A DNA stretch of 64,000 nucleotides, from the IMG/VR virus record IMGVR_UViG_3300036770_004723, positions 1 through 64,000 of that record; one strand, written 5' to 3'. Shown piece by piece: positions 24,378-35,428 of this stretch (within the stretch, counting starts at the first letter, position 1; each line of letters opens with the position of its first letter). The translations under genes were made by a program, and so were the position numbers. Under the pieces are notes generated by a model. It was not told the origin of the DNA and made no database searches. It saw nothing but the letters and a program-made list of their open reading frames with translations.

Positions 24378-25883
24378 ATGAATTTTTCCACACGATTGGA
24401 ATTAATATCTAATCAAACAGATCCTGATCAAAGTCTAGGTAAACTAGACAGTTTAGGATCTGTTAAATTTGACACAGAACAAGCTGCAAATCCTTTAAAT
24501 ATATCTTTTGCTTATGATAAAAAAGCAGGAATACTTTCTTTAGTTTTATCTCCAGACAACATAATACAGGCTACAGGTTTTATCACGGAAAGTATGGTAG
24601 GTACGGGATTACGAGGCGGGAAAGGTAAAAGGGGACGTGATGGAAAAAATGGAAGATTAGGTTATGATGGAAAAACTGGGAAAACGGGATGTGTAGGGTT
24701 ACCAGGTAAAAAAGGTAAAAAAGGTCTAAGTGGAAAAGATGGCGAAGATGGACCTATTGGGCCAATAGGTTATGCAGGTCCAATAGGCGAAGATGGCGAA
24801 GATGGCGAAGATGGCGATAAAGGTATTATAGGACATGAAGGTTCAAGAGGTCTAACAGGTTCTAGCTGTTGGCAAGGTGAAGAAGGAATTCAAGGACCTA
24901 AACCTTTTGAATTTGTACATTTTTCACCTACTCCACCAAATGACTTAACTGTTTATCTTTGGGCACAGCCTGTAGAAATTTCTGTAGATCCGACAACACC
25001 TGCTATACCGCAAACTCCAATGTCAGGATCTATAGAAAGTAAAAGTATGAATGTGCCGACTGTAGGATCTGGTTGGTATCAAGGAACATTATACTTTAAT
25101 CTAAGTAGTTTTCAAGGAGGCACTGGACCATTTATATATAAATGGTCAGGTGACTACTCAGGAAAGTTAGAATTAGTTGTTGTAGACACAGGCGAAGCCA
25201 GTCAAAACCTAAATTTAAGATGTAGACTTTATTTAAATGAGACTACTGTTAAAAGATTGGAAGGCAAAGTGTATCTTGAAATAACAGATTCATCTAACGG
25301 ACAAAAGTTAAACTTAGAGGCCAATTACTCTTTTATCGTACAAGCTACTTTAATTGTTGGTGGGGGCGGTGGTGGAGGCGGTGGTGGTTGTATACTATAC
25401 GGCCAAAAAGTTTTAACAGTCACCAAGAAAAATGTTTTAATAGAAAATGTTTTATTAGGTGACAGTTTATTAGGGTGTGATATTAAAGGCGTTCCAGATT
25501 CTTCTGGAGGCAGCATGAAATATTTTGAGTGGTCTACAACAAATCTTATTGAACATGAAACGGATGTGTATGTAAGAAAAGCTGATCACTCAACACATAA
25601 TGTTTACTATGAAATAAACGGTGATCTGTGTTTAACAGGCGAAGAAGCACTTTTAGTGTGCCGTAATGAACATTGGCGCTTTTTGCGGGTAGTTAATATA
25701 AAAATAGGTGATCTGCTCAAGCATATAGATGGAACAAAAAAGATTACTGAAATAAAGAAAATCGAAAAAGATGTTAAAGTAGTCAGTTTAGATGTTGAAA
25801 GCATTGATATGTTTTATGTGAACGGTTACGTTATACATAATAAAGAAGCTTTAGATGCAGAATACAAACAAATAGAATATTAA
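24378..25883 (+). CDS. Collagen-like fibre protein with C-terminal Gly10-Hint domain
   Basis: Long Gly-X-Y run, beta domain, Gly10, then C-ILYG...YVNGYVIHN. Confidence 0.85.
   Translation: MNFSTRLELISNQTDPDQSLGKLDSLGSVKFDTEQAANPLNISFAYDKKAGILSLVLSPDNIIQATGFITESMVGTGLRGGKGKRGRDGKNGRLGYDGKTGKTGCVGLPGKKGKKGLSGKDGEDGPIGPIGYAGPIGEDGEDGEDGDKGIIGHEGSRGLTGSSCWQGEEGIQGPKPFEFVHFSPTPPNDLTVYLWAQPVEISVDPTTPAIPQTPMSGSIESKSMNVPTVGSGWYQGTLYFNLSSFQGGTGPFIYKWSGDYSGKLELVVVDTGEASQNLNLRCRLYLNETTVKRLEGKVYLEITDSSNGQKLNLEANYSFIVQATLIVGGGGGGGGGGCILYGQKVLTVTKKNVLIENVLLGDSLLGCDIKGVPDSSGGSMKYFEWSTTNLIEHETDVYVRKADHSTHNVYYEINGDLCLTGEEALLVCRNEHWRFLRVVNIKIGDLLKHIDGTKKITEIKKIEKDVKVVSLDVESIDMFYVNGYVIHNKEALDAEYKQIEY
25389..25841 (+). 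other. Hint (intein-like) domain, 151 aa, non-canonical
   Basis: Cys1 (aa 338), block B TGEE (His replaced), terminal HN followed by Lys. Confidence 0.8.
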
Positions 25884-25892
25884 GAAGGTAAT

Positions 25893-26543
25893 ATGTCAAA
25901 ATTAACTACAGTTCCTGTAGGTTTAATTACTGCACCTTCAGGGCAAGATGGTGCAAAACTTCAGGTAAAAAATAAAGCAATTGTACCGGTAACAACACAA
26001 GATCAAAATGTCACACCGATAACAAAAATGGAATTCGATGCAAGCGTAGGTGTTTTGACAATTGTTTTTTTAAACAATTCTTCTATGCCTGTTAGTGGTT
26101 TCCCTACTTTATCTGATATACCTCAAGGACAACAAGGACCTGAAGGAGAACCAGGAATTGATGGTCGTGATGGTCGTGATGGTCGTGATGGAAAAGATGG
26201 TGAAATTGGTTGTGTTGGCCCAGTAGGTGAAACTGGTGATCAAGGTGAAGATGGTAGAGATGGATTAGAGGGACCTATTGGCCCAATAGGTATTCAAGGA
26301 CCTCAAGGAAAAAGAGGTGAACGTGGGAAAAAAGGAGAGCAAGGAGATCAAGGACCACCCGGTAAACAAGGATTACCTGGTATAGAGGGACCACGAGGAA
26401 AAATTGGCAAACAAGGTCCACCAGGAAGAATAAATATTTTAGTAAGTGAAACAGATCCTGGTCCAAGTTTAGGTATCGGCGGTATTTGGGTAAATCCTTT
26501 AATAGGTCAAGTCGCAGATGATACCGCACAATTTTTTTCATAA
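25893..26543 (+). CDS. Collagen-like fibre protein
   Basis: ~100 aa Gly-X-Y run, then ETDPGPSLGIGGIWVNP cap. Confidence 0.85.
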   Translation: MSKLTTVPVGLITAPSGQDGAKLQVKNKAIVPVTTQDQNVTPITKMEFDASVGVLTIVFLNNSSMPVSGFPTLSDIPQGQQGPEGEPGIDGRDGRDGRDGKDGEIGCVGPVGETGDQGEDGRDGLEGPIGPIGIQGPQGKRGERGKKGEQGDQGPPGKQGLPGIEGPRGKIGKQGPPGRINILVSETDPGPSLGIGGIWVNPLIGQVADDTAQFFS

Positions 26544-26552
26544 GGTAATTTT

Positions 26553-27044
26553 ATGAGTATAACACAAATTCCTTTAGATTTAATAAGTCCTGGTGCAGTT
26601 TCTGGAGTATTAAGTGCTGCCGGTAATTCAGTTCATGTCACACCAAGCTCAAACGATGTAAATGAATTAAGAGGATTTTATGATCCTTCACAAGGAATAT
26701 TAACTTTAAGTATTCCAAACATTGGAAAAATAAATATCGCAGGTTTTCCAACAAAATCGGATGTTGGTGTAGGCAGACAAGGACCTAGCGGTCGAGATGG
26801 ATCTGCTGGCATTGACGGGTTGATAGGTGAAGCAGGCACAAAAGGTTCTCTTGGTTGTCGTGGCCCTGAAGGACCTCAAGGAAGACAAGGTGAAAGAGGA
26901 CCAAGAGGTTTAGTAGGTCCTCAAGGACAACAAGGCATTCAAGGCATTCAAGGTAATGACGGACGTGATGGAAAAGTTTTAATATTCATACAAAGTGAAC
27001 AACCTGGTGCAGTTGGCGCGGGCGCAATTTGGATAAGACCTTAG
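26553..27044 (+). CDS. Collagen-like fibre protein (paralogue of 25893)
   Basis: Same N-domain (YD...G.LTL...GFPT), Gly-X-Y run, EQPGAVGAGAIWIRP cap. Confidence 0.85.
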   Translation: MSITQIPLDLISPGAVSGVLSAAGNSVHVTPSSNDVNELRGFYDPSQGILTLSIPNIGKINIAGFPTKSDVGVGRQGPSGRDGSAGIDGLIGEAGTKGSLGCRGPEGPQGRQGERGPRGLVGPQGQQGIQGIQGNDGRDGKVLIFIQSEQPGAVGAGAIWIRP

Positions 27045-27566: not shown

Positions 27567-27584
27567 TAATTGGGGATTAGGATT

Positions 27585-30500
27585 ATGGCAAGGCTACGTT
27601 TTAGATCGCCTTATAATAACAAATGGTTAGATGCTTGCAATCATCAAATATTTATCAGGTCCCCTGATAATAGAACTTGGTATCAATTAGATCCAAAACG
27701 TGCTAGTGTCCGTGATGGTGGAAATTTAAATTGGTTAGAACTTGATTGTAATCCTGATCCACTTTTTGATGAACCTTGTGCATTTAAAGATATAGCAAGC
27801 GTTAACTGTCCTAGTGGTACTCCTACAATTGAGTTAGGTTCAGGTGACGGTACTGGAAGTAATGGTCCTCAATTCAATTTAGTAAATGGTTATCCGGCAG
27901 GTTACGACTTGCCGGATGCTGGTTCTTCAGGATTTTTCTTAGATACTTTAATATCAAGTGCAAAAGGTTTAGCTATCAAAAGACCTGCTTTAAATTTTGC
28001 ACTAGAGTCCTATGATCCGTCAGGTACAACAAGTAATTTAGGTCGTGGTACATACGATAACCCTAATTATTTGTGGGCAACTACATTTAGTAGTGGCTGT
28101 GCTATTACCGAAACAATTTACGATCTTGGATTAGTAGCTGGTTGGTATGAAATTCCATTTGCTTGTTATCACCCTGAAGGTATTAGCGTAGACGTTTATT
28201 ATTTAGGTAGACGCATTGCAACAACATGTGGACGCATTAAAGATCGTTACAAGATTGAATTCTTTTTTGATCCAAGTGCAGGATCTGGTGAAAGTCGGAT
28301 AATGATCAGAGTACGTGGTGAAGAATCAACACGTTGGTCATTAATGGTTATAGGGCCAAAACAAAATTTAAGTGTATACAATTTAGATTGGACAGATTTA
28401 ACTCAAGCGCTTGCCATACGCCAAGATGAATATAATGGTACTCCTATATTTCCAGCACCTTGTCACGCCACAGTATTTCCAAGAACATATAAAACTAATG
28501 ATGGAAAATGGTTTTATGAATTTCATCACTATGTAGGTGAGAACGCAGATCCTACTGAAATCGCTAGAATGGTTTTAGACTATAGTAGTTGGATGAATCA
28601 TGATAAATTTGAAATATATCATGGAGGTCTAAGAATTGGAAGTACAATGGATCCAACTACTTTATTAGGTATGATTGAATTTTTGTGGGAACCTAATCGT
28701 TTTGTTATACCTGTACCAGATTTAATGATAAGGGTTAGTGCAGAAAATAGAGAATACGGCCAAGATATAATGAGCTGGTATTATACATTATTCTGTCAAA
28801 ATACTGCTGGATATAGAGCGAATCCTTGGCCTTGTGAAACGCCTATTGCAGGTTTAAGTAGCATGGGACATAGTAGCACCGAAGATAACTATAACATGGA
28901 TAACGGAGTACAAAAAGGTGTTGTTAGTGTAAAAGTTATTCCTTACGGAGACTTCAACTACTCTGTTAGTATATTCGATATAGATCAGAATTTAATTTCT
29001 TATACTGAAGCATCTAAAACAGCATTTATTCAGTTTTTTATTTTTAAAGATCAACATGGGAATTCTAGAAATAGAATAACAGTAAGGATCGATGCACCGC
29101 TAGGATCAAGCTGGACTTACTTTGTAGGTTGTCCTGTTGAATTAATTGATATTGAAATAGATGATAAAGTTGTTCCTGTGTGCGATGGAGATGTTGAGAT
29201 ATCAATTCAAAATTTAAGTATTCAAAAAAATACAACAGGCAAATTTACATTGAATACTAATATTCCTGTCCCATCTGATCTAACTATTAACGTAGCTACT
29301 TCTGACGGTACAGCGTTGAGTGCATTAGGTGCAGCAAACTACGGAGGATTACCTAATATCTACGGTATTTTCAATGATGTAGACTCTATATCTGATGGTG
29401 CTACGGTAGCAACTAAATCTGGTAGATTTTTAATACAGAATTTTCCAACTGCTTCAGTTATTTTTGATAACGGTTGGGGAAATTTAGCAAATCCAGAGTA
29501 CAAAGGTAAGACACTTGGTAGCAACACTAGATTTGCTGAAAATATTCTAACATCTACATTTGCAAATTTAAGTCCAGATGCAAGAGTTTTAATAAACTCT
29601 TGGAAGCATCGCTTAGGTGATTTAAGTGGTAAACGTTGGTTAATATTAACCGACACCTCAGACAGCTTAAGTGATTTTTCAGTAATATGTTCAAACTTTA
29701 TTCAGAGCATGATAAACATTTATGGATTAACTGTACAAGTAGTCAAAGACGATTACAGTAACTTACCTGCTCTGTATGATATCCTAACAATTGCAAATAG
29801 CAAAAAATGGGCAGATGTAGGCAAATATAGTTCAGGAGGCGTACATTATATTAATAGAGTTCTACAAGGATATAAGAGTCCTGTAGCTATAGGCATAGCC
29901 ACACAAATAAAACAAAATAAAGTTTTTCACGCCTATTTTAAAAATAGCGCAAATCGTTTATCTGAAAATATTTTTATACGTGACGTAATGAATTGTTTTA
30001 CCGGCGTTAAGTTGCAATGGAATGAACAAGTATCTAAATCACTGTCGGTTCCAAGTGTAAGTTTAAATGTACACACTCAACAATTTCCTGATACACCACT
30101 AACAAATGGTATAACTGAACAAAAATTAGATACTGATTTTTCAGTTATTGATATGCGTTATGATACTGTTGTAAATTTAGATCCTGATTATGAAGCTAGA
30201 TCAGGAACTGTTGTTATTCCAGCAGGTCAAAGTTCAGGAACATTTGATGTACGTACTTTAGATCCAGCAGCCAATCCAGTCGGTAAATTCTTTTTCCTAG
30301 ATCTTTTGACATCTTCTTATGGTGATATAGTTGAAGAACAAGGTAAAGCAACAATAATTAATTCTACAGCACCTAATCCTGTAACAGACGTACACTTCAC
30401 AAAAACATCTTATGCTGCAATGACATGGACAAGCGACGCAGGATGCAGTGTGGTATTTGGTGTAGATTCTGCTAATCTAGATCTTGGTGACATGATTGGT

Positions 30501-30896
30501 TCATTGGCTGCTGGAGAATTTGATTCAAATCCTTCAGGTAATTTTAATAACGCCCGTTATTATAAAGTAGGCAGTTATAAAAATGATTCTACTCTCACTT
30601 ATGAGTGCAAATGGGAATACGTGGTTAAGGTAAAGGATTACGCAGCTAATTTAGTTTTTTTACCTACATCAATCACCAGTTTTCAACCTATTTCCTCGAA
30701 TAAACGTTTTATAGTTTCTATGAATGTGCCAGCAGGTACAGAAGTAGATCAAACGGCAATAGTGGAAGCAAACTTAATTATTAAAGATAGTTTAGGTAGA
30801 ATATCGAAAAGTAATACAGTGACAATTGTTTTAACTTACGTAGTTCCTGGTTGGGGAGGTGGCGGTGATACTGGACCTAGCGGAATTGTTTTCTAG
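27585..30896 (+). CDS. Large multidomain virion/fibre protein with split Calx-beta domain
   Basis: Likely ATG at 27585 (AGGA RBS); repeated beta modules; Calx-beta halves ATSDGTA and DYEARSGTVVIPAGQSSGTF; ends GWGGGGDTGPSGIVF. Confidence 0.75.
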   Translation: MARLRFRSPYNNKWLDACNHQIFIRSPDNRTWYQLDPKRASVRDGGNLNWLELDCNPDPLFDEPCAFKDIASVNCPSGTPTIELGSGDGTGSNGPQFNLVNGYPAGYDLPDAGSSGFFLDTLISSAKGLAIKRPALNFALESYDPSGTTSNLGRGTYDNPNYLWATTFSSGCAITETIYDLGLVAGWYEIPFACYHPEGISVDVYYLGRRIATTCGRIKDRYKIEFFFDPSAGSGESRIMIRVRGEESTRWSLMVIGPKQNLSVYNLDWTDLTQALAIRQDEYNGTPIFPAPCHATVFPRTYKTNDGKWFYEFHHYVGENADPTEIARMVLDYSSWMNHDKFEIYHGGLRIGSTMDPTTLLGMIEFLWEPNRFVIPVPDLMIRVSAENREYGQDIMSWYYTLFCQNTAGYRANPWPCETPIAGLSSMGHSSTEDNYNMDNGVQKGVVSVKVIPYGDFNYSVSIFDIDQNLISYTEASKTAFIQFFIFKDQHGNSRNRITVRIDAPLGSSWTYFVGCPVELIDIEIDDKVVPVCDGDVEISIQNLSIQKNTTGKFTLNTNIPVPSDLTINVATSDGTALSALGAANYGGLPNIYGIFNDVDSISDGATVATKSGRFLIQNFPTASVIFDNGWGNLANPEYKGKTLGSNTRFAENILTSTFANLSPDARVLINSWKHRLGDLSGKRWLILTDTSDSLSDFSVICSNFIQSMINIYGLTVQVVKDDYSNLPALYDILTIANSKKWADVGKYSSGGVHYINRVLQGYKSPVAIGIATQIKQNKVFHAYFKNSANRLSENIFIRDVMNCFTGVKLQWNEQVSKSLSVPSVSLNVHTQQFPDTPLTNGITEQKLDTDFSVIDMRYDTVVNLDPDYEARSGTVVIPAGQSSGTFDVRTLDPAANPVGKFFFLDLLTSSYGDIVEEQGKATIINSTAPNPVTDVHFTKTSYAAMTWTSDAGCSVVFGVDSANLDLGDMIGSLAAGEFDSNPSGNFNNARYYKVGSYKNDSTLTYECKWEYVVKVKDYAANLVFLPTSITSFQPISSNKRFIVSMNVPAGTEVDQTAIVEANLIIKDSLGRISKSNTVTIVLTYVVPGWGGGGDTGPSGIVF

Positions 30897-31377
30897 GTCA
30901 GGACATACAGTTCAATCTTTATTAATTGAATCATCTAATCTAAATAACCCTCCGATTATAATCGGAGGGTTTGCTAGACATCTACATGATCTAAAAGGTT
31001 TTAATGATATTGATTGGCTTTGCTATGACCAGACTAGTTTTGTGCAAATGTGCAATTTAATGAATAAACATTTTGAGTTAATAGCTATTTCCATATGCAA
31101 AGACTACTTTTATTATAAAGAAGTTGTTGGCGCGAACAAAATAATTCATCAGGTTCATACTTTACCTAATGTTGGTTGTCACCATGATTTTTTAAACTAT
31201 GCTGATTTTACTGTTAGCTGCATAGGCTTTAATTATACGACTATAATTAAACATCGTTTATTTGATTATGATCTTAAACAAAGTATTTTAAGAAAAAACG
31301 AAAGTTATGTTAAACCTTTTGATAGATCTAGGATCAAGAAATATACGGATCGTGGATTTAAAATGAATTTAATTTAG
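30865..31377 (+). CDS. Nucleotidyltransferase-fold protein (PolyA/CCA head-like)
   Basis: IIGGFARH...FNDIDW, DFTVSCIGF and RIKKYTDRGF motifs; GTG at 30865 with GGAGG 5 nt upstream. Confidence 0.7.
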   Translation: MILDLAELFSRSGHTVQSLLIESSNLNNPPIIIGGFARHLHDLKGFNDIDWLCYDQTSFVQMCNLMNKHFELIAISICKDYFYYKEVVGANKIIHQVHTLPNVGCHHDFLNYADFTVSCIGFNYTTIIKHRLFDYDLKQSILRKNESYVKPFDRSRIKKYTDRGFKMNLI

Positions 31378-31387
31378 GATAAGAAAA

Positions 31388-34300
31388 ATGGCTGGAACAC
31401 CTTTTGTATCAGTTTATGAAAATTTAAATGCAGATCCAGCAGACACAGTTGCGAATTATACTTGGAAATACGATCACGAGTATATTGTTTATGTAGTAGA
31501 AAGACATAAACGTACTGAATTAGGTATGAGTTATACACTAACACTAAGATCTGCTATAGGTTCATCTGATAGAGGATTTATCGCCAAACACATCGACTGC
31601 TATGTTATATTTGATCAGCAGGATATGAAAATAAAAACACAGACTAGACAAGGTGATTGGTGTCCGATAGTAAAAATACTAGAAAGACCTGTAACATTTG
31701 GTGTAACTGATCATACTTCTGAGAATTGGGAAGAGTGGTGGACAGGTACGGCAGCTCAAGTATCAAAACCTTGGGAAGATGACTACGAATATTTTGTACT
31801 TTCAAGTCAAGGTGCTGCCCCTGGAAATATAGGTTGGTCAAGTTTTGTTACTTCTTTACATTTTTTTATACCTGAAGAATTTGAACAAGTCCCTATAAAT
31901 GGTGAGTGCTTTATGCGCCCCACTGTGGATGGAGGTATTAAGTTTTGGCGTCCACATTGGGGTGGAAATAAAAGTAGTAGATACGTAGCTACTTGGGGCA
32001 ACGTATCTATTATTTCACATATATATAGAAGAAAAATTCGTTTTGATACAGCACCATCAAAACAATTTAATAGTTGGTTTAAAAAGCAAATATTCGGTTT
32101 TCCTTATGGCGTATATGCAGGTAATAAATGGCGCGATGCGAAGCCATGTAATTGGGTAGAAGATAAAGAAGTTATTATGATGACCTTGGACTGTTCTGGT
32201 CCTGACGAATTAGCTTCCTCTTATTTTTTTACCGATAGTGCTATGTTTACTTTGCCTAGTAGTGTAATGAATTATAGTGAAGGGGGCATGGTATGCGAGT
32301 CGGGAGTTAGTCATTTTACCATGTTAAATACTCCCAATTTTGCAAGACACGGTGTTAAAACTGTGCATACCTACGGAGATGATGGTGCAACTGTTTTTGT
32401 AATGTATGAAAAACTGGATGTTTTAGCTGACGATCCTGTTATTATTGTTCCTCCTGAACCAGATCCTAAGCCGCCGTCATGTTCAGACTGTGTAAGGGCA
32501 GGATCTATTTGGGAACAAACTGCAAATATTGAAGTAAAATTTTTAAAGCCTGTTGATTGGCAATTACGTAATTACCGTTACGTGTGGTCCGGTGATATAG
32601 GTAATGGAAATGTTGAGTTACTTGGAACCGAAGACAAAGGGCGTATTGCCAAAATTCGTTTTGCAAAACAAATGGCAGTTGAAGACTCTTCAACCTTTTT
32701 ACCTGTTAATATTGTAGTAGAAGTATTTGACGAAGATTATAGTGCAATAGGTATATCTGATAAAGATAGCGCAGTAATATCTTTTGAATTGCCTTGTGTA
32801 ATATTAGCGAACGAACCTAATATATCTATACAGGATTTAAGTATTATAGAAGGTGATGTCGATAATAAAATACTGTTAAAAATTTCTGCCAGTGAGCCAG
32901 CTGAAGGTGGAGATATAACAGTTGATTGGACTACAGTTGAAGACACTGCAACGAATAATGTAGATTATTACCAAGCTAGCGGGACCGCTACTATAGTCGA
33001 AGGATCAAGTGAAGCTATTGTGGAAATAATGTTGATAGGTGATGATATTTTAGAAAGCAATGAAACTTTTATTGTACGTATTTCAAATGCAAGTCGTGGA
33101 AATATTGTTAAAGATACAGGTATCATAACTATACTAGATGATGATGCAAGTCCTTGCGGTGTAGATACGCCAGCAGGCGGTGCAGGTGTAACAGAAACAA
33201 CACATTTCTTAGGCTCTAATCCTGGACGTGTTATAGTTACATTTGAAATGTACGGTGTACAAGATAAAATGGAAATTTTTTATGAAGGAAATTTAGTTGC
33301 GGCCACAAGCCCAGGTCCTGATGGTAAAAATGTACCAGGAGGTAATATTTTAAATCCTGGATTCGTTAGCGATCAAGGTAATCTTTCTTTTGACTATTTT
33401 GGTCCACCTAGAGCAACTTCATTTATGATCAGAATGACAGGTCCTGATGGAACTGAATGGAATTATAAATTTAATTGCCCTGTTCCTTTCGATGGTGGAT
33501 GGGATGGAAAATTAGATGCAGTTCCTACATTAATATTCGATCCTTTAGGTAATGGTACTGAGTTTGACGCAGGTTTGTTTATTATGCCTGATGGATCTAT
33601 CCAAGCAACTTCTGCTTCAGGACCTTTAGGTTATTGGAGTGGGGCAATTGCAAATAGCTCTAATTCCGAAGTAAAATTTGAAGTTATTTCTGGTACGGCA
33701 AGTGTACATAATAATGCTCCGGATTTTTCACCTTTAGCATCTTCCAGACAAATATGGTTACGTCTTCCATTAAATTCTCCTGTTACTGAAGTAACTATTA
33801 GAGTTTATTTGCGTGAAGCCGGTTCTACAACAGCAATAGTAACTAAAGACGTGGTGTTAAAAGTAGGATCTGGAGGAACTGGAGGTGGAGGCAATGGCTG
33901 TTTTATTTACGGCACATTGATCGACATGGCTGACGGTACTAAAAAGAAAATTGAAGATATTGTTGTAGGTGATAAATTAAAAACTTTATTAATACCTGAT
34001 ATGCCGGACGCAAGTGCAGAAGATCCTACCAGCTATTTCGATTGGTCTGAAATAGCTATCGCACCTACTTATGCGGAATGTTATGTAAAAGATGTGGATC
34101 ATAATAGCTTTAGTTATTATTACAAAATATTTGCAGAAAATATGTTTGAACCTTTATGTATAACAGTAGAACATCCGGTATTAGTTAAATTTCAAGAACA
34201 AGGTATGGAATGGCATTGGGATACACCAGCTAGATTAAGAATAGGTGATTATCTTTATAATAATAAGATGGAAGCAGTTAAAATTTTGACGATAGAAATA

Positions 34301-34420
34301 GTGGTTGAAAAAATAAATACCGCTAATTTAAACGTAGAAAATTTAGATACATATTTTGCTAACGGTATATTTGTACATAATAGTGAAAATACAGAAACAC
34401 CTAAAGAACCTATAGGGTAA
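31388..34420 (+). CDS. Multidomain virion/fibre protein with Calx-beta and C-terminal Hint domain
   Basis: ISIQDLSIIEGD...VDWTTVEDTATNNVDYYQASGTATI...ILDDD (Calx-beta); GGTGGGGNG-CFIYGT...VHN-S. Confidence 0.85.
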   Translation: MAGTPFVSVYENLNADPADTVANYTWKYDHEYIVYVVERHKRTELGMSYTLTLRSAIGSSDRGFIAKHIDCYVIFDQQDMKIKTQTRQGDWCPIVKILERPVTFGVTDHTSENWEEWWTGTAAQVSKPWEDDYEYFVLSSQGAAPGNIGWSSFVTSLHFFIPEEFEQVPINGECFMRPTVDGGIKFWRPHWGGNKSSRYVATWGNVSIISHIYRRKIRFDTAPSKQFNSWFKKQIFGFPYGVYAGNKWRDAKPCNWVEDKEVIMMTLDCSGPDELASSYFFTDSAMFTLPSSVMNYSEGGMVCESGVSHFTMLNTPNFARHGVKTVHTYGDDGATVFVMYEKLDVLADDPVIIVPPEPDPKPPSCSDCVRAGSIWEQTANIEVKFLKPVDWQLRNYRYVWSGDIGNGNVELLGTEDKGRIAKIRFAKQMAVEDSSTFLPVNIVVEVFDEDYSAIGISDKDSAVISFELPCVILANEPNISIQDLSIIEGDVDNKILLKISASEPAEGGDITVDWTTVEDTATNNVDYYQASGTATIVEGSSEAIVEIMLIGDDILESNETFIVRISNASRGNIVKDTGIITILDDDASPCGVDTPAGGAGVTETTHFLGSNPGRVIVTFEMYGVQDKMEIFYEGNLVAATSPGPDGKNVPGGNILNPGFVSDQGNLSFDYFGPPRATSFMIRMTGPDGTEWNYKFNCPVPFDGGWDGKLDAVPTLIFDPLGNGTEFDAGLFIMPDGSIQATSASGPLGYWSGAIANSSNSEVKFEVISGTASVHNNAPDFSPLASSRQIWLRLPLNSPVTEVTIRVYLREAGSTTAIVTKDVVLKVGSGGTGGGGNGCFIYGTLIDMADGTKKKIEDIVVGDKLKTLLIPDMPDASAEDPTSYFDWSEIAIAPTYAECYVKDVDHNSFSYYYKIFAENMFEPLCITVEHPVLVKFQEQGMEWHWDTPARLRIGDYLYNNKMEAVKILTIEIVVEKINTANLNVENLDTYFANGIFVHNSENTETPKEPIG
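33899..34381 (+). other. Hint (intein-like) domain, 161 aa, canonical splicing residues
   Basis: Cys1 (aa 838), block B TVEH, terminal His-Asn, +1 Ser; no homing endonuclease. Confidence 0.85.
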
Positions 34421-34651: not shown

Positions 34652-35428
34652 ATGAATCTTACACAAATACCAATGGCTTTGGTAAAGCCTCAAACAGGCG
34701 CTATAGCAGGCCAAACAGTTAGTGTCGTAAGTCCAGAAAAATTAGGTACTGAGGATCCGCAATCAGGGTTAGTTCCTGCTGTAATACAAGGAACTTATGA
34801 TAGTGAAAGCGGAACAGTAACATTAGTAAATGCTGACGATAGTATTGTTACCATAACTGGATTTCCAACTGAGAGATCATTACCGCAAGGCCACAGAGGA
34901 CCTGAAGGTAAAGTTGGCTTACGTGGTTTACCTGGTAGGTCAGGACGAGATGGTAAACCAGGAATACAAGGTTGTCCAGGAGTTAAAGGAGATCGTGGAT
35001 TACGTGGGCCGATAGGGCCAGAAGGGCCAAGAGGCCCACAAGGAGAAATAGGTAAAACAGGTGAGAAAGGTGATAAGGGAGATAAAGGTGACGCAGGTGC
35101 TGACGGCGTAGAACCTGAATATTTAAAAACTAGTCGTGGTGTTTCTATCACAATAAAAAGAAGTGGCGGAAATATACAAAGCGGCTATTATGAAAATATT
35201 TTACAGGATAGAACAATTACTGTGCTTTTCCCGCGTAACCTTGTTAACCAAGTAGCATCAATAATTCTTTTCTTTAAAAATCCTAGCAGCTACCAAGCAC
35301 AAAATTACGAAATAGGGAACTATTTTTATGATGACCTTGAAATTGGTGGCTTTACAATAACTTTAAAAGGTACTGTACCTACACCGCTAGAAGCTTGGCA
35401 ATTCTGGTGGCTGGTAATGGGCGATTAA
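34652..35428 (+). CDS. Collagen-like fibre protein with beta C-terminal domain
   Basis: LTQIPMALV / YD...G.VTL...ITGFPT N-domain, Gly-X-Y run, IQSG...ITVLFP fibre-tip-like domain. Confidence 0.8.
   Translation: MNLTQIPMALVKPQTGAIAGQTVSVVSPEKLGTEDPQSGLVPAVIQGTYDSESGTVTLVNADDSIVTITGFPTERSLPQGHRGPEGKVGLRGLPGRSGRDGKPGIQGCPGVKGDRGLRGPIGPEGPRGPQGEIGKTGEKGDKGDKGDAGADGVEPEYLKTSRGVSITIKRSGGNIQSGYYENILQDRTITVLFPRNLVNQVASIILFFKNPSSYQAQNYEIGNYFYDDLEIGGFTITLKGTVPTPLEAWQFWWLVMGD

Follow-up and report, generated by a model that had tools for sequence, protein, structure and literature searches.

An intein-like Hint module and its tail lysine at the C terminus of a jumbo phage fibre protein

Hint domains are known in several roles, namely, as inteins, Hedgehog processors, bacterial intein-like (BIL) domains, and releasers of pretoxins. 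The type-A BIL domains, which were reportedly described by Amitai in 2003 and by Dassa in 2004, are the variety most pertinent to the element analysed here. This element lies in the window, that is, the whole 64,000-nucleotide stretch of DNA at positions 1 to 64,000 of the IMG/VR virus record IMGVR_UViG_3300036770_004723, where a 501-amino-acid (aa) fibre protein ends in a run of ten glycines (Gly10), a predicted Hint domain, and a 13-aa tail. In type-A BILs, the C-terminal His-Asn is present but the nucleophile at position +1 is absent, and these domains mainly cleave at both ends and can splice via the freed amine (PMC4031507, PMC7664689, PMC7765530). BIL2, from the polyubiquitin-like BUBL1 locus of Tetrahymena, produces, without ATP, an isopeptide that joins the C terminus of the N-extein to the epsilon-amine of a lysine in the C-extein (PMC8616854). 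As detailed below, the fibre protein combines several features of these systems with a lysine that recurs in the tails of nearly all its relatives.

The Hint fold and its closest relatives

The assignment of Cys338-Asn488 to the Hint fold, as judged from a sequence profile and a structural model, is beyond a chance motif match. When a 13-sequence profile was compared with the PDB, BIL2 (6tmm/6y75) was matched with E ~3e-10 and the BIL of C. thermocellum (2lwy) with E 3.7e-10; the best entries labelled as inteins reached E 4e-5 or weaker, and Sonic hedgehog E 1.1. In the AlphaFold2 model of aa 318-501, the Hint core has a predicted local distance difference test (pLDDT) value above 90, and a Foldseek search with this model ranked BIL2 (6y75) first (E 5e-9), followed by 2lwy and then by many inteins and Hedgehog (1at0), with a probability of 1.00 to BILs, inteins, and Hedgehog and a Foldseek template modelling (TM) score of 0.81 on the target for 2lwy; every structural match of the modelled domain is a Hint-fold protein. 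With the single sequence as the query, all Hint hits in Pfam were below threshold, PT-HINT (PF07591) scoring 13.8 bits against a gathering cut-off of 27.7, so that recognition of the domain required the profile and the structural model, and Pfam alone would miss it. The alignment A2 consists of proteins of the window and of databases only. The Hint domain proposed in the original prediction, which was made from the nucleotide sequence, is thus borne out by independent means, and the features on which it had been based, i.e., Gly10, Cys1, the block B motif TGEE, His-Asn, Lys at +1, and the 13-aa tail, are all where they were described. Among the Hint hallmarks, Cys338 and Thr420 are present, and position B:10 is occupied not by His but by Glu423, a residue conserved throughout its clade.

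From its N terminus onward, the protein comprises a small beta region, the collagen repeats, a beta-sandwich, Gly10, Cys338 with the remainder of the Hint, and the tail, and the stop codon is at 25881-25883. The protein had been described as a Hint on a collagen fibre; a collagen protein does carry the Hint, but what precedes it is the beta-sandwich at aa 210-326 and not, directly, the collagen helix. This sandwich consists entirely of beta strands with pLDDT of 81-96 in the full-length AlphaFold2 model, and a Pfam search with it found no match. Both models, that of aa 318-501 and that of the full length, show the Gly run as disordered and the tail as disordered or of low pLDDT. Gly10 is the sole run of at least five glycines in all six frames of the window, the GC content of which is 35%. 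The virion structural protein family PHROG 38766 matches aa 19-491 (E 5e-61).

Compared with the described systems, the module is closest to the type-A BILs. It retains His487-Asn488 without a nucleophile at +1, its best sequence and structural matches are BILs, and it shares with type-A domains the Hint fold, Cys1, Thr B:7, and the absence of an endonuclease, as well as the kind of host protein, i.e., variable surface or fibre proteins, not conserved sites of essential enzymes. Unlike a type-A BIL, the phage module is located at the extreme C terminus with a tail of 1-32 aa in place of a real C-extein, is preceded by a Gly run, has a single Lys in the tail and, in this clade, Glu at B:10. A canonical class-1 intein would have Cys, Ser, or Thr at +1 for the branched intermediate and would be inserted in a conserved host protein with a functional C-extein; the fibre domain has no +1 nucleophile, is followed by only 13 aa at the extreme C terminus, and does not interrupt a conserved host protein. 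The original exclusion of canonical class-1 splicing in the absence of Cys, Ser, or Thr at +1 therefore holds, the +1 residue being Lys489 here and Leu or Arg in the orthologs.

BIL2 is the best match in both sequence and structure and also has Gly at -1 and the C-terminal His-Asn, and its isopeptide chemistry is what the conserved tail Lys of the phage module suggests. The settings differ, in that BIL2 lies between two ubiquitin-like domains and performs protein conjugation, whereas the N-extein here is a fibre (the beta-sandwich after collagen) and the C-extein comprises 13 aa; furthermore, BIL2 has His69 (B:10) and His125 (the F:4 equivalent) where the fibre Hint has Glu423 and Ser470. With the Hog-Hint of Hedgehog (1at0), to which the original prediction had turned for its chemistry, the module shares the presumed Gly-Cys scissile bond and would share a thioester resolved by a non-canonical nucleophile and a functional N-terminal product. 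A thioester at Gly-Cys is indeed sensible chemistry, but the resemblance to BIL and BUBL domains is greater, the Hedgehog match being far weaker (Foldseek E 2e-5, in addition to the profile value given above). Hedgehog has a sterol-recognition region and makes no use of a C-terminal Asn, whereas the fibre Hint has His-Asn followed by 13 aa only, and retention of the near-invariant His-Asn implies that, unlike in Hedgehog, the C-terminal junction would be cleaved as well.

Two further systems merit comparison. The PT-HINT domain of polymorphic toxins, the best-matching Pfam family among the relatives of the module (38 of 88 members), is likewise an autoproteolytic Hint near the C terminus of long surface or fibre-like proteins, but it releases a C-terminal toxin domain, whereas the 501-aa protein, which scores below the Pfam cut-off, has neither a toxin nor any other domain downstream. 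The intramolecular chaperone peptidase S74 is also a C-terminal module of trimeric phage fibres that removes itself after assembly (PMC7824862), but it differs in both fold and chemistry (a Ser-Lys dyad, in oligomers), and no Pfam match to it and no sequence or structural similarity was found in the 501-aa protein.

The module family, its tail lysine, and the Glu clade

When 1.84 billion cluster representatives were searched with a profile, 6,935 proteins were retrieved at E <=1e-3, among them 127 at <=1e-30, and 157 family proteins were examined for the residue census. Cys1 is invariant in the aligned domains (199/199), and the C-terminal block G is nearly so (His 215/219, Asn 218/219); block B has its Thr at B:7 in 195/211 and its His at B:10 in 184/210. 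Gly occupies position -1 in 115/174 domains, and runs of 3-11 Gly are frequent. By contrast with these positions, +1 varies widely (A 33, K 31, V 15, I 14, L 11, and Ser/Thr 12 among 159 domains) and is non-nucleophilic in about 92% of the domains. A single Hint at the extreme C terminus, with a tail of median length 8 aa, is found in 110 of the 157 proteins, and the N-terminal partners are of the fibre or adhesion type and very diverse, including collagen, Calx-beta, BACON, Ig, fn3, Gp38, and Gp53-like domains. In the ESM Atlas, nearly all of the nearest clusters for which taxa are recorded are viral, and a scan of IMG/VR yielded 218 viral stretches with the module family. To judge from this census, the family, which is BIL-like and carried mostly by phages, ancestrally had a non-nucleophilic residue at +1. 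Such a residue being the family norm, there was no selective removal of it in the 501-aa fibre gene; of the splicing residues that the original prediction took to have been selectively removed, it is the His of block B that is special, its replacement by Glu being a conserved trait of one clade.

The tails themselves show a bias of a different order. Lys is present in all 110 short C-terminal tails of the census, exactly once in 102 of them, and Arg is present in 13. On average, Lys makes up 3.2% of the bodies of these proteins, such that, from their own composition, about 84.5 of the 110 tails would be expected to lack Lys, and none does. An independent IMG/VR sample of distinct tails on viral contigs agrees, with Lys in 41 of 44, the exceptions being the tails DR and RV and one weak hit. 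The trivial explanation, that these are merely the Lys-rich C termini of AT-rich phages, was rejected because, in the last 8 aa of 363 other open reading frames (ORFs) from the same loci, Lys occurs in 51% and Arg in 29%, as against 100% and 12% in the tails. The preference for Lys over Arg suggests amine chemistry rather than charge, and the occurrence of Lys in nearly every tail of the family means that a built-in amine acceptor is available, so that the external nucleophile invoked in the original prediction is not needed. The conserved lysine is usually within two residues of the C terminus, and Lys also occurs in 40 of the 49 linkers between consecutive Hints of tandem multi-Hint proteins. 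In the window protein, the choice between its two tail lysines can be made by comparison with the eight other orthologs of the Glu clade (alignment A4), all of which have Lys at +9 and Leu or Arg at +1; because +1 varies (Lys, Leu, or Arg) and Lys at +9 is constant, the relevant residue would be K497, not K489. The conservation of the tail lysine, as it emerges from these alignments, is a new finding.

The family extends to quite different contexts. In marine phage contigs (L005:8001-9530, P0008; relatives P0006, P0007, P0012, P0013, P0015), where DnaB and ribonucleotide reductase are neighbours, Pro/Thr-rich proteins end in GGGG-Cys-Hint-HN and an acidic tail with one Lys, which implies that the Gly-Hint-tail module is common well outside the jumbo phages. 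There are also tandem proteins with up to ~8 Hints (P0009, at L007:5335-9192; P0022; and the IMG/VR loci L058, L061, L063, and L068-L085), in which the domains are joined by linkers of a mere 1-5 aa, usually Lys-bearing, such as HN-K-C, HN-KGGGG-C, and HN-IPPK-C. If all junctions in such arrays were cleaved, nothing but free Hints and tiny Lys-Gly peptides would result.

The replacement of His B:10 by Glu is confined, within the census, to nine representatives of the orthologous ~500-aa fibre and one unrelated domain. The nine fibres are monophyletic with 99/99 support, and 26 of the 151 Hint columns (17%) are invariant among them, including C338, T420, D477, H487, and N488. By mean pairwise identity in the clade, the Hint, at 49%, is no less conserved than the remainder of the protein (beta-sandwich, 46%; N terminus, 39%). 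The residues that are invariant in this clade alone are E423, H449, S470, and V481. S470 aligns, in the comparison of the profile with the PDB, to His125 of BIL2, a Zn-binding residue adjacent to the catalytic His69 (PMC8616854), and F:4 of inteins is located at the N-terminal scissile bond (PMC4031507). D477 was considered as the block F Asp and rejected, since the BIL2 alignment places it at the position of the block F His and makes Ser470 the F:4 residue. As B:10 and F:4, neighbouring positions of the active site, changed together and then stayed fixed, we read this pattern as remodelling, not decay: it looks, from the alignment, like an active site that still works with Glu423, Ser470 at F:4, and possibly His449. 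There is a precedent in the intein Tko CDC21-1, which lacks His B:10 and is active through a compensating residue (PMC4031507). The Glu clade appears to be a natural experiment in which a Hint active site would work without its most conserved residue.

Putative self-excision and its alternatives

The fold of the Hint, the conservation of its residues, and the statistics on lysine are observed; from them we infer a sequence of chemical steps. We consider it moderately probable that the 501-aa fibre ends in a self-excising, type-A BIL-like Hint module on a flexible Gly10 linker, with the tail Lys, the freed alpha-amine, or water resolving its thioester. After folding, Cys338 would attack the carbonyl of Gly337 in an N-S acyl shift, forming a thioester, and Asn488 would then cyclise, cutting off the 13-aa tail. 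The thioester could be resolved by the epsilon-amine of K497 in the tail, yielding a Gly337-(N-epsilon)Lys isopeptide as in BIL2 of BUBL; the alternatives are water and the alpha-amine that becomes free at +1, which type-A BILs use when they splice. By any of these routes, a 17-kDa Hint would be released, and the mature fibre, ~35 kDa per chain, would end in poly-Gly, with or without a 1.6-kDa peptide. A removable Hint could serve as a transient assembly or masking domain or could be a cassette that moves between fibre genes.

Several points weigh against this scheme. Two viral tails of the IMG/VR sample have Arg and lack Lys, and the distance of Lys from Asn varies from +1 to +26, albeit mostly between +4 and +10, which suits a flexible nucleophile, not a fixed catalytic geometry. 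The amine of lysine is a poor nucleophile at neutral pH unless it is activated. The models are uninformative on the tail because of its low pLDDT, and a homotrimer prediction for aa 200-501 scored 0.00, providing no evidence either way on trimerisation of the Hint or of the beta-sandwich. A literature search found no paper on the function or virion processing of these modules in any member of the family. Finally, only two inteins are known to lack His B:10, one of which is a pseudogene, so that activity could be slow or lost (PMC4031507). On balance, what the original prediction observed at this locus stands in full, and its interpretation is supported in part.

The same invariant Cys1 would also be called for if the poly-Gly end were covalently anchored in trans, with an outside nucleophile, be it the Lys of a virion protein, an amine or hydroxyl on the host surface, or a small molecule, capturing the Gly337 thioester. 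Hedgehog is anchored in this manner to cholesterol, and the ubiquitin-like domains of BUBL to their targets. Gly at -1 together with the long flexible Gly run resembles the Gly-Gly end of ubiquitin-like proteins, and BIL2, the closest solved relative, attaches its N-extein to lysines in other proteins (PMC8616854). Nevertheless, each module brings in cis a single Lys of its own, which is the nearer acceptor, and His-Asn would be superfluous for simple capture in trans; no conserved partner gene was identified, the highly diverse N-terminal domains suggest no common target, and Hint-less versions of the neighbouring fibre are conserved, so that we regard anchoring in trans as unlikely. The lysine was also considered as a cross-link between fibre chains, a candidate rejected by logic, inasmuch as cleavage at Asn detaches the acceptor peptide from any fibre. 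In a different vein, the Hint might be retained as a non-catalytic distal knob on its Gly tether, with a role in receptor binding, spacing, or docking, processing having been lost with the His-to-Glu change. A structural role gives no reason for the invariance of Cys1, Thr B:7, His-Asn, and the tail Lys where only 17% of the columns are invariant, and the clade-specific substitutions, which include two active-site positions, resemble compensation, not drift. The most conserved catalytic His is indeed lost, though (PMC4031507), the whole Hint is under purifying selection, the protein in its entirety is annotated in RefSeq and PHROG as a virion structural protein, and the Hint-less neighbour also has a Gly tether and a conserved peptide, so that a tether need not imply cleavage; a retained domain of this kind seems rather doubtful to us but deserves somewhat more credit than anchoring in trans.

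It is also conceivable, if improbable, that the unit of Gly run, Hint, and Lys tail is a selfish cassette that spreads among fibre genes by recombination and splices out harmlessly, with no benefit to the fibre. Orthologous fibres differ in carriage of the module, which is present in gp132 of phage NCTB and absent from the 1108-aa protein of the window; the module is joined to many unrelated N-terminal domains; tandem multi-Hint arrays exist; the two Hints of the window come from distant branches of the tree; and, in NCTB, a free-standing Hint without Cys1 directly follows another Hint. There is, however, no homing endonuclease, and a useless C-terminal module could be shed by one stop codon, yet this one has been kept at ~49% identity across a deep clade of orthologs. 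The chemistry would be the same as in the favoured self-excision scheme, the difference pertaining solely to the reason for which the module exists.

If self-excision does proceed in this manner, its implications reach beyond a single fibre. We raise, as a tentative possibility, that lysine-directed splicing is performed in tailed phages by a large class of C-terminal Hint modules that has gone unrecognised, in which a single conserved Lys of a mini C-extein of ~8 residues takes the poly-Gly end from the Cys1 thioester as an isopeptide and cyclisation of Asn frees the Hint. This would be the phage counterpart of the ciliate BUBL reaction and a new, ATP-free form of maturation or capping of virion fibres, of which the tandem HN-K-(G)n-C arrays would represent multi-turnover versions. 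Lysine-directed isopeptide splicing has been reported so far for one ciliate BIL only, and the invariant single Lys makes its wider occurrence testable; for Hints at phage fibre tips, the literature search found database annotations only ("contains intein domain") and no study. Should the modules self-excise, the mature C termini of many annotated phage fibre and receptor-binding proteins would be mis-stated, which bears on structural work, host-range prediction, and phage engineering, and, should lysine-directed splicing be widespread, ~150-aa modules with Gly-tolerant junctions might be useful for protein ligation and C-terminal labelling.

Module-free variants and genomic setting

The window itself contains a natural version of a fibre without the module. 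The 1108-aa protein is the ortholog of NCTB gp132, a "large intein domain protein", and the BLASTP alignment of the two stops just before the Gly run, where gp132 continues into a Hint and the 1108-aa protein has GGGG and a 9-aa peptide. Its orthologs P0159 and P0160 (46-53% identity) likewise end in GGGG and a short peptide, and the conservation of this Hint-less ending implies that this particular fibre works without a Hint. To judge from the alignment, the 1108-aa protein seems to show at its end what this site is like without the module. The 286,584-bp genome contains exactly two Hints, with neither a third Hint nor a remnant of one after the 1108-aa ORF. In the place where the relatives have the Hint, there is an ORF of 172 aa (30859-31377) that begins with GTG and overlaps the end of the 1108-aa gene; no match to it was found in Pfam, PHROG, or the Hint family search, and its GG...D.D motif, we presume, loosely recalls nucleotidyltransferases. 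In NCTB, gp135 (L001:10440-10901), encoded directly after the Hint-bearing gp136, is a free-standing Hint of 153 aa with HN-K but with neither the N-terminal segment bearing Cys1 nor the His of block B, and may, from its sequence and position, be a cassette displaced by recombination. This protein was considered as the closest relative of the Hint of the 501-aa protein and rejected, as it is 25% identical to the latter and no nearer than the other Hints of NCTB.

The window belongs to a complete virus record of 286,584 bp, the source of which is a ~287-kb jumbo myovirus of the PaBG/Lu11/NCTB/Y3 group, the "hairy" jumbo myoviruses (PMC7412058, PMC6143709). The gene order around the 501-aa protein, i.e., a gp25-like wedge protein, a 487-aa protein, a 1547-aa tail protein, a 788-aa protein, the 501-aa protein, and two short collagen fibres, is common to phage NCTB, Erwinia phage Alexandra, and the metagenomic locus L008, and a PAAR gene precedes the series in the relatives. 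In GenBank, the NCTB ortholog is labelled "putative phage tail protein, contains intein domain", and the RefSeq label mentioned above applies to the protein as a whole. The coordinates of all features are collected in Table 1.

Table 1. Features of the fibre gene with the Hint module and of related sites in the window
Feature	Coordinates	Strand	Basis or remark
Collagen-like tail-fibre / virion structural protein with C-terminal Hint module; 501 aa, 54.1 kDa	24378..25883	+	ORF translation
Collagen triple-helix region, aa 77-163, 29 G-X-Y triplets without a break	24606..24866	+	Pfam PF01391, E 1.3e-14; triplet count
Beta-sandwich, aa 210-326, between collagen region and Gly run	25005..25355	+	Full-length AlphaFold2 model
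Gly10 linker, aa 328-337, ten mixed GGN codons	25359..25388	+	Sequence; Gly337 is the -1 residue of the presumed scissile bond
Predicted Hint domain, Cys338-Asn488, 17.2 kDa, type-A BIL-like	25389..25841	+	Profile against PDB, AlphaFold2 model, Foldseek
Cys338 (Cys1), presumed thioester nucleophile	25389..25391	+	Invariant, 199/199 aligned domains
Block B T420-G-E-E423; Thr B:7 kept, His B:10 replaced by Glu	25635..25646	+	Sequence, family alignment
His449, invariant in the Glu clade alone; candidate compensating residue	25722..25724	+	9/9 in clade; N, D, K or S elsewhere
Ser470, equivalent of intein block F:4 / BIL2 His125	25785..25787	+	Invariant in the Glu clade alone; elsewhere N 53%, T, D
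His487-Asn488 (block G), presumed site of Asn cyclisation / C-terminal cleavage	25836..25841	+	Family: His 215/219, Asn 218/219
13-aa tail (mini C-extein) KEALDAEYKQIEY; Lys489 at +1, Lys497 at +9	25842..25880	+	Translation
Lys497 (+9), clade-conserved tail Lys, candidate acyl acceptor	25866..25868	+	Alignment of orthologs
GGGG near C terminus of 1108-aa ORF (27570-30896), Hint-less natural version	30855..30866	+	Ends in GGGG + DTGPSGIVF
1010-aa fibre-like protein with Calx-beta domain (E 2.4e-10), carries second Hint	31388..34420	+	
Second Hint, Cys838-Asn998	33899..34381, with tail to 34417	+	Preceded by GSGGTGGGGNG

The second Hint has an intact block B (TVEH) and His-Asn followed by Ser at +1, and its 12-aa tail contains a single lysine, Lys1006, at +8. 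The two Hints had been called paralogous on account of a shared loop, PD.S...YF.WS. The second Hint does have this loop, but so does the family at large (the W is present in 69% of its members), so that it marks no special relationship, and the two domains, which fall in different major branches of the tree, are distant members of the family, not a recent duplicate pair. The window also contains further ORFs with collagen repeats, at 25893-26543, 26553-27044, and 34652-35428. Like the N-terminal and collagen part of the 501-aa protein, the first two match PHROG 38766, but they are devoid of the beta-sandwich, the Gly run, and the Hint, which suggests that a collagen helix needs no Hint.

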